DNA of 63,818 nucleotides, counting the filler, from Bigelowiella natans CCMP2755 (lineage: Eukaryota > Protista > Cercozoa): NCBI GenBank assembly GCA_000320545.1. It is 7 parts of 7 records of this genome, joined end to end, with 100 filler letters (N's around TTAATTAATTAA, not from the genome) between each part and the next. Parts side by side here need not be neighbours in the genome. Positions count along the whole stretch, not along the records: positions 34,246 to 51,310 come from ADNK01003498.1; 6 more parts are not named here. One strand, given 5' to 3'. Position 1 is the stretch's first letter. Each line of letters starts with the position of its first letter. The position numbers and the translations under genes were made by a program. Below are positions 45,577-51,310 of the stretch, in pieces. Below the pieces are notes generated by a model, which saw nothing but the letters and a program-made list of their open reading frames with translations, did not search any database and was not told the origin of the DNA.

Positions 45577-48356
45577 ATGTCGGACATCTTTGGGGCTGTG
45601 CAGCGAAACGATCTTGCTTCTCTGAAGCGTTTGATGGAGGGGGAAGAGGCAAACATCGAGGCTAAGAACAGACGCGGTGGGTATGCTAGGAGCAGAATTA
45701 GCAGTTACAGCGGTAGCTAGGGGTAAGAAGTTGGTAGATGATCAGCAGTTGCAGTGTGATTCATGCCTAGGCTCTGTGGTTGCAGTGTTGATCAACACGG
45801 GGAGAAAAGAATGATGGACAGCTTTGTGATTTTGTTACGACCTACTTGAAGGAGATGGGAGGAGTAGGAATTATGCACTAATAGGAAGTGTTAGTAGGAA
45901 ACATTTCATTGAAAGAAGTAGCAAGGAGTAGAAGTAGCAAGAAGTAGCAGTTGAATTGAGAATCTACATGGCAGCACTAGCAGTGTCATCACAGGGACGT
46001 CGCACAACATCGTCATCATCATCAAGATTGGATTGTTACATTGCGGCTTAGTTTTTCATTGATCATTGTTCTCATCGTTAGCCTGGATTGCCAGTCCACA
46101 AGATGAGAGGGCGATCATCAAGAGGAGAGGAGAGAGGAAGATTTATGTTTCGTTGTGATTCATTTTGATTGGAAATCGATTTAGGATTGCTTCGGTGTTG
46201 CTTTCGGTATGGCATATTTGTCACTGTTAGGTTACACACCGTTAATCCTTGGCGCTAGAGAGGGTAATTTGGAGATTGTCCAGTATCTGGTTGACAAGAA
46301 GGCAAACATCGAGGCTAAAAACAAATCCGGTGGGGGTGCTAGCAGCAGCATTAGCACAGTAGCAGCGGTAGCTAGTAGCAAGAAGTTGGTAGGAGATCAG
46401 AAGTTACAGTGTGATTCATGCTGAGGCTATGTGGTCGCAGTCTTGATTAGCAAGGGGAGAAAAAAACTATGGAGAGTCTTGTGCAACTGAGTTGAAGGAG
46501 GAGATGGGAGGAGGAGGATTTGAGAATTAGTAGAAAGTGGTTGTAGGAAGCATTTTATTGAAAGAAGTAGTAATGTGTAGAAGTAGCACGAGGTAGCAGT
46601 GGAATTGAGAATCTACCTAGTAGCATCAGCACTATCATCACAGGGACGTCGCACAATGTCGTTTTCATCATCAAGATTGGATTGTTATTTTACGGCATAG
46701 TTTTTCATTGATCATCATTCTCATCGTTAGCCTGGATTGCCATTTCACAAGATGAGAGGGCGATCATCAAGAGGGGAGGGGAGAGGAAGATTTGTGTTTC
46801 GCTGTGATTTATTTCGGTGTTTGTTGATTTGCGATTGCTTTGATGTTGCTTTCGGCATGGCATGTTTGCCACCATTAGGTCATACACCGTTAATCATCGG
46901 CGCCCTTAGGGGCCATCTGAAGATTGTTCAGTACCTGGTTGGTAAGAAGGCAAACATCGAGGCTAAAAACAAACACGGTGGGTATGCTAGGAGCAGAATT
47001 AGGAGTAGCAGCGGTAGCTAGTAGCAAGAAATTGGTAGATGATCAGCAGTTGCAGTGCGATTCATGCCTAGGCTGTGTAGTTATAGCATCGATTAGCACA
47101 GTAAGGAAAAATGATTGCGAGTCTTGTGGTTTTTTTGCGAACAAGTTGGAGGAGATGGGATTAGGAAGATTTGAGTGTTGATGGAAAGTGGTAGTAGGAA
47201 TTCTTTCATTAAAAGAAGTAGCAAGGAGTAGAAGTAGCAAGAGGTAGCAATGGAATTGAGAATCTACATAGCAGTATTAGCGGTAGTATCACCGGGACGT
47301 CGCACAACATCGTTATCACCATGAAGATTGGATCGTTACGTTATGTTATGGCTGGTGTTTTCATTGATTATCATTCTCATCGTTACCTTGGATTGCCATT
47401 CCACAAGATGAGAGGGCGATCATCAAGAGGGAGGGGAGAGGAAGATTTTTCTTTCGCTTTGACCTATTTGGATGGAAATTTTTTAAGGATTTCTTCGTTG
47501 TTGCTTTTGGTATGGCATGTTTGCAACTATTAGGTGAGACACCGCTAATCAAGGGCGGCGAATGGGGTCATCTGGAGATTGTGCAGTATCTGGTTGGCAA
47601 GAAGGCAAACATCGAGGTTAAGAATAATCAAGGTGGGTGTGCCAAGAGCAGCATTATTAGTAGCAGCGGTTAGCTAGTAGCAAGAAGTTGGTGGATGATC
47701 AGCAGTTGTAGTGTGATGCATGCCTAGGCTGTGCAGTTGCAGCATCGATTAGCACGATGAGAAAAATAATGATTGAGCGTCTTTTGATTTTGTAATCATC
47801 GTCAAGTTTGGACTGCTATATGAGGCATATATTTGGTTCTGTTAATTTTAATTTTCATCGTTAACCTGGGTTGACATATCACAAGACCTATGCGAATTCA
47901 TCAAGTGGGGGGGGATATAGGAAGAGTTGCATTTCGTTGACTTATTTTGATGGAAATAGTTGCAGTTGGTTCAAAAATTAATTGGAATTTATTGAAGTGT
48001 GCCTCGATTTTGTTCTCGCATTTTTTAAACTATCTATGATGGATATCGTTTCTTTTGATCCGCAGCGTGATGATGAAAGGATTGTGAATGATTGATTGAT
48101 GTTGTCCACGGCAATGGCAAATATTGCTTCGTTACCACCAGGTAAAACCGCGGCAGAAGTTGCTATATATAACCATCACGACGATGTTGTGGGATTTCTC
48201 CACAAAGATGCCGAAATTCAAAAGAGACTTAAAGAGGCCCAAGAGACGGAGGATGGTAGGAAGGAGGCTGACAAAGAGATGAAGAAAGACGGGCAAGATG
48301 CCGAGAAGGCAGAGCGAAATCAAAAGAAAGATGAGAAGAAGAGTAGCCCCAGGTGA
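45577..48356 (+). CDS. Ankyrin-repeat protein, block 1 (N-cap, 3 internal repeats, C-cap plus charged coiled tail), one repeat per exon
   Basis: Exons 45577-45676, 46231-46329, 46879-46977, 47534-47632, 48142-48356; repeat consensus GxTPLIxGAxxGHLEIVQYLVGKKANIEAKNxx. Confidence 0.9.
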
Positions 48357-48637
48357 GAGGCTGAATAGGCGCGCGCGCACACATACACACACACACACAC
48401 ACATATTCATATATATATATATATATATATATTATATTTGTTTTATACTAATATATACTAATATTTATTTATATTTATTTATACATTTGAATAATATAAT
48501 GAGTATGCTTATATTATTACATAACGATGTATATATCATATATTTATATGTTATTTATTTATATGCGCTGCCAAATTTGAAAGTGATCTTAATGTTTCAT
48601 ATGTTCATGATTTATCTTACACATATTTATATAAATT

Positions 48638-48676
<39 letters not shown>

Positions 48677-51293
48677 TGCAGTATGTTAGTAATGTCTGAC
48701 ATTTTCGGGGCTGTGGAGCGAAATGATATTGCTTCTCTGAAGCGTTTGATGGAGAAGGAAGAGGCAAACATCGAGGCTAAAAACAAATACGGTGGGTATG
48801 CTAGGAGCAGAATTAGCAGTAGCAGCGGTAGCTAGTAGCAAGAAGATGGTAGATGATCAGCAATTGCAGTGTGATTCATGCCTAGGCTGTGTAGTCGCAA
48901 TATTGATTAGCACGGGGAGAAATAAACGATGGAGAGTATTGTGCAACTGAGTTGAACGAGCAGATGGGAGCAAGATGATTTGAGAGTTAGTAGAAGGTGG
49001 TGGTAGGAAGTATTTCATTAATAGAAGTAGCATAGAGTAGAAGTAGCCAGAGGTAACAGCGGAATTGAGAATCTACCTAGTAGCATTAACACTATCATCA
49101 CAGGGACGTCGCACAATGTTGTCATCATCATCAATATTGGATTGTTATATTACGTCCTAGTTTTTCCATTGATCATCATTCTCATTGTTATCCTGGATTG
49201 CCATTCCATTAGATGAGAGGGCGATCACCCAGAGGGAAGGGGAGGGAAGGGGAGAGCAATATTTGTACTTCGTTTTGATTCTTTTGGATGTTTGTTGATT
49301 TACGATTGCTTCGTTGTCGCTGTCGCTATGGCATATTTGCCACTATTAGGTGAGACACCGTTAATCATCGGCGCCCCTAGTCGTCATCTGGAGCTTGTCC
49401 AGTATATGGTTGGCAAGAAGGCAAATATCGAGGCTAAGGACGATGACGGTGGGTATGCTAGGAGCAGCACAGCAGTAGCAGCGGTAGCTAGTAGCAAGAA
49501 GTTGGTAGATGATTAGCAGTTGCAGTGTGATTCATGCCTAGTAAAAGCATCAATTAGCACGGTGAGAGAGGAATTATTGAGTCTCATGGTTCCATTGCGA
49601 CCGAGTTGAAGGAGATGGGAGGAGAAGGAAAAATTTTAGTGTTAGTCGGAACTGGTAGTAAGAAGTATTTTATCAACATAAGTAGCAATTAGTAGAAGTA
49701 GCAAGAGGTAGCAGTGGAGTTGAGAATCTACATAGCTGTACTAGCAGTATTATCACAGGGACGTCGCACAATATCGTCATCATCATCAAGATTGGATTGT
49801 TATTTTACGGCATAGTTTTTCATTGATCATCATTCTCATCGTTAGCCTGGATTGCAATTTCACAAGATGAGAGGGCGATCATCGAGAGGGGAGGGGAGAG
49901 CAATATTTGTACTTCGTTTTGATTCTTTTGGGTGTTTGTTGATTTGCGATTGCTTTGATGTTGCTTTCGGTATGGCATGTTTGTCACTATTAGGTGAGAC
50001 ACCGTTAATGCTTGGCGCTTTCTATGGTAATCTGAAGATTGTGCAGTATCTGGTTGGCAAGAAGGCAAATATCGAGGCAAAGAGCAAAAGCGGTGGGTAT
50101 GGTAGGAGCAGCATTAGCAGTAGCAGCGGTAGCTAGTAGCAAGAAGATGGTAGATGATCAGCAGTTGCAGTGTGATTGATGCCTAGTAAAAGCATCAATT
50201 AGCACGGTGAGAGAGGAATTATTGAGTCTTATGGTTTCTTATCGACCGAGTTGAAGGACGAGATGGGAGGAGGAGGATTTGAGAATTAGTAGAAAGTGTT
50301 AGTAGGACGTATTTCATTAATAGAAGTAGCATAGAGTAGAAGTAGCAAGAGGTAACAGTGGAATTGAGAATCTACCTAGTAGCATTAGCACTATCATCAC
50401 AGGGACGTCGCACAATGTCGTCATCATCATCAATATTGGATTGTTATATTGCGGCTTAGTTTTTCCATTGATCATCATTCTCATCGTTAGCCTGGATTAC
50501 CATTTCATAAGATGAGAGGGCGATCACCAAGAGGGAAGGGGAGGGAAGGGGAGAGCAATATTTGTACTTCGTTTTGATTCTTTTGGATGTTTGTTGATTT
50601 ACGATTGCTTCGGTGTTGCTGTCGCTATGGCATATTTGCCACTATTAGGTCGTACACCGTTAATGCATGGCGCCCTTGGGTGTCATCTGGAGATTGTGCA
50701 GTATCTGGTTGGCAAGAAGGCAAACATCGAGGCTAAGGACAATGACGGTGGGTGTGCTAGGAGCAGCATTAGCAGTAGCAGCGGTAGCTAGTAGCAAGAA
50801 GTGGGTAGATGATCAGCAGTTGCAGTGTGATTCATGCCTAGTAAAAGCATCAATTAGCACGGTGAGAGAGGAATTATTGAGTCTCATGGTTCCATTGCGA
50901 CCGAGTTGAAGGAGATGGGAGGAGAAGGAAAATTTTAGTGTTAGTCGGAACTGGTAGTAAGAAGTATTTTATCAACATAAGTAGCAATTAGTAGAAGTAG
51001 CAAGAGGTAGCAGTGGAGTTGAGAATCAATATAGCAGATTTAGCAGCATTGTCATAAGGATGTAGCACAATGTCGTCATCATCATCAAGATTGGATTATC
51101 ATGTTGCGGTTTAGTGTTACCATTGATCATCATTCTCATTGTTGACCTGGATTGCCATTTCACAAGATGAGAGGGCGATCATCAAGAGGGGAGGGGAGAG
51201 GAAGATTTGTGTTTCGCTGTGATTCGTTTGGGTGGAAATTGATTTCGGATTGCTTCGGTGTTGCTTTCGCTATTGCATGTTTGCCACTATTAG
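45677..51293 (+). repeat. Eight mutually homologous ~510-560-nt introns (exon+intron unit ~650 nt)
   Basis: All start GTGGGT/GTGGGG..GCTAG(G/C)AGCAG or a close variant, most share GGGACGTCGCACAA and GATGAGAGGGCGATCA, and most end ..GCCACTATTAG or a close variant. Confidence 0.92.
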
Positions 51294-51310
51294 GTAAGAC
51301 ACCGTTAAAC
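48692..51310 (+). CDS. Ankyrin-repeat protein, block 2 (N-cap, at least 4 internal repeats), truncated by gap; may be the same transcript as block 1
   Basis: Exons 48692-48791, 49350-49448, 49994-50092, 50649-50747, 51294-gap; N-cap MSDIFGAVERNDIASLKRLMEKEEANIEAKNKY nearly identical to block 1. Confidence 0.9.

Follow-up and report, generated by a model that had tools for sequence, protein, structure and literature searches.

The diversification of a protein surface made of exchangeable repeats is a logic already known from the leucine-rich repeat (LRR) exons of Tetrahymena, from the brown alga Ectocarpus and from the ankyrin repeats of fungal NOD-like receptors (NLRs). Here we describe a locus with a comparable layout in the unicellular marine chlorarachniophyte alga Bigelowiella natans CCMP2755, at positions 45577-51310 of the window (the whole stretch of DNA analysed, 63,818 nucleotides in seven joined parts, with record ADNK01003498.1 covering positions 34246-51310). 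In this locus single ankyrin repeats are encoded by symmetric exons set in a shared family of introns, and the substitution pattern of these exons shows the residues of the putative binding groove to be under strong diversifying selection, with a conserved framework.

The Ectocarpus ROCO (LRR) and NB-ARC-tetratricopeptide repeat (TPR) genes resemble this locus in having one repeat per symmetric exon, exon shuffling, inactivated cassettes and positive selection on the ligand-binding face, and also in that an immune role is inferred and unproven (PMC3341825, PMC11378527). They differ from it in lineage (brown algae versus Rhizaria), in repeat type (LRR or TPR versus ankyrin) and in exon design (72-nt LRR exons versus phase 1 exons of 99 nt), while the complete B. 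natans unit has no ROC-COR or NB-ARC domain and skipping was not seen among the splice joints listed. The Tetrahymena genes with 90-bp LRR exons share with the B. natans locus the tandem arrays, the exact-length exons of the same phase, the conserved introns, the young clonal expansions and the ectopic recombination, and when they were described, comparably uniform exon-intron repeats were not known to the authors from any other eukaryote (PMC6564038); B. natans differs in using ankyrin repeats, phase 1 and dedicated N-cap and C-cap exons, and no link to retrotransposons was seen. The Podospora NLRs with highly internally conserved ankyrin (ANK) repeats also have near-identical frameworks, concerted evolution and positive selection, there on the inner helix and beta-hairpin, but these are NACHT/NB-ARC receptors with effector domains which recombine within their coding repeats (PMC4986451, which makes no mention of introns), whereas in B. 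natans every repeat has an exon of its own and most of the homology comes from the intron. With either a different repeat or no NOD/GTPase domain, the B. natans cassettes appear to belong to none of these three families, and no earlier account of the B. natans family or of a stand-alone ankyrin cassette system was present in the literature searched, which left subscription papers mostly uncovered.

In protein architecture there is a further parallel with the designed ankyrin repeat proteins (DARPins) and ANK-N5C, which likewise consist of an N-cap, two to four self-compatible repeats of 33 residues and a C-cap, have a near-identical fold, and vary at positions 2, 7, 10 and 11 and in the turn. 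DARPins are however engineered and have TPLHLA in their framework, whereas B. natans has TPLxxG, an invariant lysine at position 30 and a 54-residue charged helix after the C-cap; the original DARPin library reportedly randomised position 30. The variable lymphocyte receptors (VLRs) of lamprey and hagfish also carry repeat cassettes between caps and a hypervariable concave face, but are assembled somatically by programmed conversion, whereas exchange in B. natans is seen only at the evolutionary scale. Animal ankyrin genes have introns at repeat boundaries too, but these are ancient and not homogenised.

Groove residues and cassette introns

The locus contains six complete internal exons on the plus strand (A1, 46231-46329; A2, 46879-46977; A3, 47534-47632; B1, 49350-49448; B2, 49994-50092; B3, 50649-50747), each exactly 99 nt long and of phase 1-1, with AG upstream and GTGGG downstream. 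Each encodes one ankyrin repeat, all six score above the Pfam Ank (PF00023) cut-off, and both the exons and the peptides given for them in the original prediction were verified at the sequence level. They are arranged in two tandem units, with unit A consisting of an N-cap, three repeats and a C-cap, and unit B of an N-cap, three repeats and a fourth which is cut off (exon B4, 51294-51310, start only). The single stack of six repeats between one N-cap and one C-cap that had been proposed has to be abandoned, as the C-cap follows the third repeat and a second N-cap lies at 48692-48791. The 3' end of unit B is beyond the sequenced piece, which ends at 51310.

Variation between the cassettes was predicted to be concentrated in the groove, and this is clearly so: the nucleotide p-distance is 0.46 in the ten groove codons, 0.09 in the other 23 codons and 0.167 in the introns. 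The framework at positions 13-30, described as almost invariant, is nearly so, with two residues each at positions 13, 15, 16, 20, 22 and 29. Non-synonymous divergence in the groove was 0.45-0.52, while synonymous divergence in the framework was 0.19-0.22 and thus similar to that of the introns, from which exons and introns would be of similar age; the framework ratio of non-synonymous to synonymous differences (pN/pS) of ~0.3 indicates purifying selection. The expected excess of amino acid change in the groove over introns and synonymous sites was also seen in site-wise models, where M2a was preferred to M1a with twice the log-likelihood difference (2dL) at 26.2 on a star tree (omega ~10; sites 2, 7, 10, 11 and 33), and at 32.8 with one wild cassette added. 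Over all 105 topologies 2dL was 21.1-31.6 and omega at the selected repeat positions ~8-18, with sites 2, 10, 11 and 33 always selected and site 7 in 94/105. None of 210 neutral-model simulations, run with and without recombination and with trees changed every 33, 8 or 1 codons, reached 21.1 (maximum 20.8).

Judged by their flanks, which differ at 16/499 positions (3%), exons B1 and B3 are recent sisters, but the exons themselves differ at 16/99 positions (16%; Fisher p=6e-6), with nine amino acid changes versus two synonymous codons. In the C-cap, 13/27 nucleotides differ from a Tara Oceans copy in codons 7-15, versus 22/186 elsewhere. The proposed match with the sites randomised in DARPin libraries was borne out by the library-derived ankyrins in PDB (4QFV, 4O60 and the D12 fusions), which vary at cassette positions 2, 7, 10 and 11; these lie on the concave face, which is the binding surface (PMC8229355).

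The flanking introns, predicted to be very similar and about 550 nt long, are 545-558 nt and 80-91% identical (all on the plus strand: iA0, 45677-46230, 554 nt; iA1, 46330-46878, 549 nt; iA2, 46978-47533, 556 nt; iB0, 48792-49349, 558 nt; iB1, 49449-49993, 545 nt; iB2, 50093-50648, 556 nt; iB3, 50748-51293, 546 nt). The intron before the C-cap (47633-48141, plus strand) belongs to the cassette family only over its first ~150 nt (53-57% identity overall), and its remainder is a separate family in common with the Tara locus L001. A recombination scan showed the cassette introns to be mosaics, iA1 included: iB1 is nearly identical to iB3 over its 5' half but closer to iA1 over its 3' half, and iB2 shifts from iB1/iB3-like to iB0-like, the 3' part of iB0 being nearly identical to iB2. 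All 12 best of the 105 intron triplets had a permutation p<0.001, in line with the exon shuffling previously proposed. Such breakpoints within introns of paralogous cassettes look like the expected footprint of unequal crossover or conversion swapping whole in-frame repeats, and because the symmetric exons lie in a shared, recombining intron family, cassettes can be duplicated and exchanged without frameshift. As read from the sequences, the mosaics show exchange over evolutionary time and not inside one clone.

Products and relatives of the cassettes

The N-cap exon of unit A (45577-45676, plus strand) comprises the ATG plus 33 codons and ends in a phase 1 donor, and its C-cap exon (48142-48356, plus strand; TGA at 48354-48356) encodes a capping half repeat with a variable first helix, followed by a charged helix of ~54 residues. 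The N-cap exon of unit B (48692-48791, plus strand) has its own ATG and shares 85% amino acid identity with that of unit A. Both units start with Met at the N-cap, and unit A terminates after the charged helix. The leader of unit A (45473-45576, plus strand) was taken from the open reading frame (ORF) list and an RNA-type contig; upstream of the N-cap it has no in-frame ATG, and hence no signal peptide is to be expected. No signal peptide, transmembrane segment or enzymatic domain was found in unit A; ankyrin gave the only Pfam hits, and the unit is complete without a NACHT, NB-ARC or ROC-COR domain. An AlphaFold model based on an alignment of seven sequences gave a confident ankyrin stack (predicted local distance difference test score 92.9) ending in a helix at residues 113-166, and was used in place of a poor single-sequence model. 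The best Foldseek matches to it were DARPins with two internal repeats (root-mean-square deviation 0.8-1.0 Å over 118-119 residues), so that the DARPin likeness extends to the predicted fold.

Splicing was read at 90% likeness from the contigs of run X15, which are presumed to be of RNA type, as guessed from the data. GT..AG joints were found for five predicted joints, namely N-cap to A1 (45675->46230), A1-A2, A2-A3, B1-B2 and B2-B3. There was no cassette-skipping joint among those listed, and all listed within-unit joints connect neighbours in order, so that they lend no support to the exon skipping suggested originally. The JGI model Bigna1 147185 (P0001; EukProt; aug1.131_g21893) starts with the 33 amino acids of the unit A N-cap and contains its C-cap exactly, but omits A1, and since A1 is spliced on both sides in the RNA-type contigs, the annotation is probably one repeat short. 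Exons were used as separate search queries, and the only full-length query was P0001, with A1 lacking. The C-cap exon of unit A matched only two proteins out of 1.84 billion representatives, P0001 and P0002, the latter encoded on a Tara Oceans scaffold. The locus is therefore nuclear DNA of B. natans, with a lineage-specific C-terminal tail. With P0001 as query, no other B. natans protein of 94-297 amino acids was found; for relatives of 275-875 amino acids, the alignment of a 500-residue ankyrin from a viral collection was swamped by generic ankyrins, with no family member in the top 120.

Further cassettes, as anticipated, were found both elsewhere in the genome, in DNA and RNA contigs, and in wild populations. 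In two DNA runs, the summed contig depth, 59-84 for single-copy contigs, rose to as much as 2300 per bin over cassette exons and was raised on cassette introns as well, which indicates tens of similar cassette copies. By eye, RNA-type contigs run from the cassette ends into many other cassettes (W-TPLILGSYN, E-TPLYSGSNN, R-TPLIIAA and S-TPLISGCDD), and also continue into a different C-cap. The pieces of unit A are matched without differences by two independent DNA runs. Of the words, 53-61% are present in the best DNA runs, with only non-reference letters near A1 and B2, which assembler repeat clean-up can cause. Judging from their number and date, the DNA runs of 2025 may come from the mutation-accumulation lines already published (10.64898/2026.01.13.699255).

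Wild cassettes were found in ocean metagenomes using a profile of the exon and its flanking frame. Locus L002 has the same intron family (80-85%) with new groove residues, L004 and L008 have a second intron subfamily whose beginning is matched by loose ends in DNA runs of B. natans, and L003 has equal exon length, phase and donor with an unrelated intron. In L004, the cassette at 161-259 has an in-frame stop at codon 14, and is either inactivated or affected by a sequencing error in a low-coverage contig. Two marine eukaryotic loci, L005 (JGI 3300056307, 257-955) and L006 (ERZ922738, 1-687), have an N-cap exon followed by phase 1 ankyrin exons of 99/102 nt, separated by 107-nt introns which are 82-92% alike, and vary at the same positions as the B. 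natans cassettes; additional profile hits of this type were P0042, P0047, P0054, P0056, P0068, P0069 and P0080. A phase 0 array from another lineage with one ankyrin repeat per exon and short, similar introns (L009, ERZ28594559, 104-525) suggests independent origins. The exon-donor DNA pattern had no match in the JGI metagenomes or IMG/VR. A viral origin of the cassette was considered and rejected, with viral ankyrin matches reaching only 46-54%. Separately, in L007 (JGI 3300042593, 130-1090) AT-rich ankyrin units 123-127 nt long follow one another in tandem, each carrying an insert of 24-28 nt without GT..AG ends; some of these inserts, which may be tiny non-canonical introns, break the frame, and there are about a dozen related profile hits.

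Candidate function and competing explanations

The explanation that we favour, and which as a whole we consider reasonably probable, is that of a multi-copy family of small intracellular ankyrin binders acting like a natural DARPin library. Each gene would make a small cytosolic binder consisting of an N-cap, n repeats and a C-cap, and crossover or conversion in the similar introns would yield new cassette orders and numbers over generations. These new combinations, together with point changes, would renew the binding surface, selection would retain those that bind a changing ligand, and the charged C-terminal helix might recruit or link a partner, or oligomerise the binder. The chances that this ligand consists of proteins of giant viruses or virophages infecting or integrated in B. 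natans are about evenly balanced: viruses are the best fit for a ligand that is intracellular and changes fast, B. natans strains differ in their susceptibility to ChlorV strains (10.1101/2025.11.19.688996), and the genome contains integrated DNA of nucleocytoplasmic large DNA viruses and virophages (10.64898/2026.01.13.699255).

Several points weigh against this explanation. No viral ankyrin is close to the cassettes (46-54%), so that nothing ties the family to viruses by sequence, and the antiviral or anti-pathogen role is one that we infer from the selection pattern and by analogy. The complete unit A has no effector domain. Expression looks low, with 71 short reads and no joints in raw RNA run X21, and at 90% likeness some of the joints could stem from paralogues. 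Summed contig depth does not equal true copy number. With the plain Nei-Gojobori method the groove ratio is no more than 0.9-1.1, since the groove codons have high apparent synonymous change too (0.48-0.51). Finally, the maximum likelihood test assumes a single synonymous rate and single-base steps, and its omega would be inflated if mutation were locally targeted or if short tracts were converted from other cassettes; such processes could contribute, and are inseparable from selection with six copies.

The same features allow other explanations, of which one retains the machinery and the selection but has a non-viral ligand, such as prey or bacterial molecules that the mixotrophic B. natans would take up, self/non-self or mating recognition, or the control of selfish elements in its own genome. 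The sequence evidence speaks for a changing ligand and not for its nature, and the fungal NLRs whose ankyrin repeats show the same pattern are members of non-self recognition families (PMC4986451). We nevertheless regard this as rather unlikely, since unit A is without signal peptide or transmembrane segment and its ligand is thus expected to be met inside the cell, which suits intracellular invaders, and since giant viruses with a strain-specific host range are documented for B. natans. We give little credence to an actively driven diversifier, with rapid rearrangement, conversion or alternative splicing in clonal lineages giving each line its own repertoire, in the manner of VLR or Dscam. 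Symmetric exons would allow this, the B1/B3 differences end near the exon edges between flanks that are 97% alike, as exon-limited conversion would give, and the raised apparent synonymous change in groove codons, the incomplete word content and non-reference letters around A1 and B2 in the best DNA runs, and the inactivated cassette in the wild (L004) all point the same way. However, no within-unit skipping joint is among those listed, there is no recombination signal or recombinase gene nearby, and introns 9-20% apart point to an exchange that is slow overall; assemblers that clean up a repeat family would be expected to lose words, and by inspection the groove codon changes are without the single-base bias of diversity-generating retroelements or of the TpA type.

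It is highly improbable, and largely refuted, that a dispensable ankyrin gene with unconstrained surface positions has simply undergone a recent tandem duplication of one exon-intron unit. In favour of this, the groove holds the positions that are structurally least constrained in ankyrins generally, unusual framework changes occur in B1 (G12R, I16L and L20M), and the crude groove pN/pS is ~1. However, the non-synonymous groove divergence of 0.45-0.52 is two to three times the 0.17-0.22 of introns and framework synonymous sites, which neutral sites could not reach; M2a is preferred to M1a whatever the tree, by a margin that no neutral simulation attained; and variation falls on the same sites in the C-cap as well as in wild cassettes. 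It is scarcely credible that an assembly artefact, or a selfish mobile unit of exon plus intron, mimics a gene family here. While the piece ends within a cassette, and a perfect 1061-nt tandem duplication upstream (38874-40993) is either misassembly-like or very recent, the cassettes and introns all differ by 9-24% and hence are not collapsed or doubled reads. The in-order splicing in the RNA-type contigs, the match of unit A pieces to two independent DNA runs and the purifying selection on the framework also argue against this explanation, as does the absence of inverted or terminal repeats and of a transposase.

If the cassettes do encode a library of binders, evolution would have reached the DARPin design, with its caps, self-compatible framework and variable positions, and the shared intron would solve the shuffling of repeats. 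As similar ankyrin cassette genes with unrelated introns occur in other marine eukaryotes, this design may be widespread, with poor gene models concealing it. A more far-reaching version, in which B. natans and, independently, other marine protists hold a cassette pool that is recombined or converted fast within clones and supplies the binders deciding giant-virus resistance, is improbable. For the recognition of giant viruses by unicellular algae the cassette family is a concrete candidate, in a species whose genome is sequenced, whose viruses have been isolated and show a strain-specific host range, and for which clonal mutation-accumulation lines exist.

Unit boundaries and neighbouring features

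Units A and B can most simply be read as two genes, separated by an AT-rich microsatellite spacer (48357-48691, no strand assigned, 21% GC) which could also be an intron fusing them. The unit A stop codon overlaps a donor-like site (48353), which is donor-like in the Tara relative L001 too, an in-frame acceptor lies at 48681, ahead of the unit B ATG, and a splice 48352->48682 would join A to B in frame; the sequence 5' of the unit B ATG is without similarity to the unit A leader. Counting against such a fusion, the JGI model ends at the unit A stop, a second in-frame stop is present downstream in both the unit A and the Tara sequence, and unit B has its own ATG, placed as in unit A. A fused transcript is thus possible but doubtful, and if true would give a bivalent fusion protein or an alternative read-through.

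An RNA-type contig spans 45473-45678 unspliced, and X15 contigs within 45473-46213 cover intron iA0 with roughly half as much depth as the spliced joint has, reflecting either intron retention or DNA in the run. In six of the seven cassette introns the last 44-55 codons contain no stop and share the reading frame of the exon that follows (e.g. 46731-46878, 47368-47533 and 49846-49993), and gene callers take these open 3' ends as ORFs. They were probably inherited by duplication, and could permit in-frame alternative acceptors.

Upstream of the ankyrin units, and unrelated to them, is an intron-rich HAD-family gene with an N-terminal targeting-like leader (36227-43150, plus strand), which is probably a phosphoglycolate/p-nitrophenyl phosphatase; its exons at 37598-37657 and 42681-42752 match Hydrolase_6 and Hydrolase_like. 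The perfect (100%) 1061-nt tandem duplication mentioned above (38874-39934 and 39933-40993) lies inside this gene and spans coding exons, and one of its introns contains a long (TGA)n low-complexity tract with a triplicated unit of 57 nt (38079-38337).

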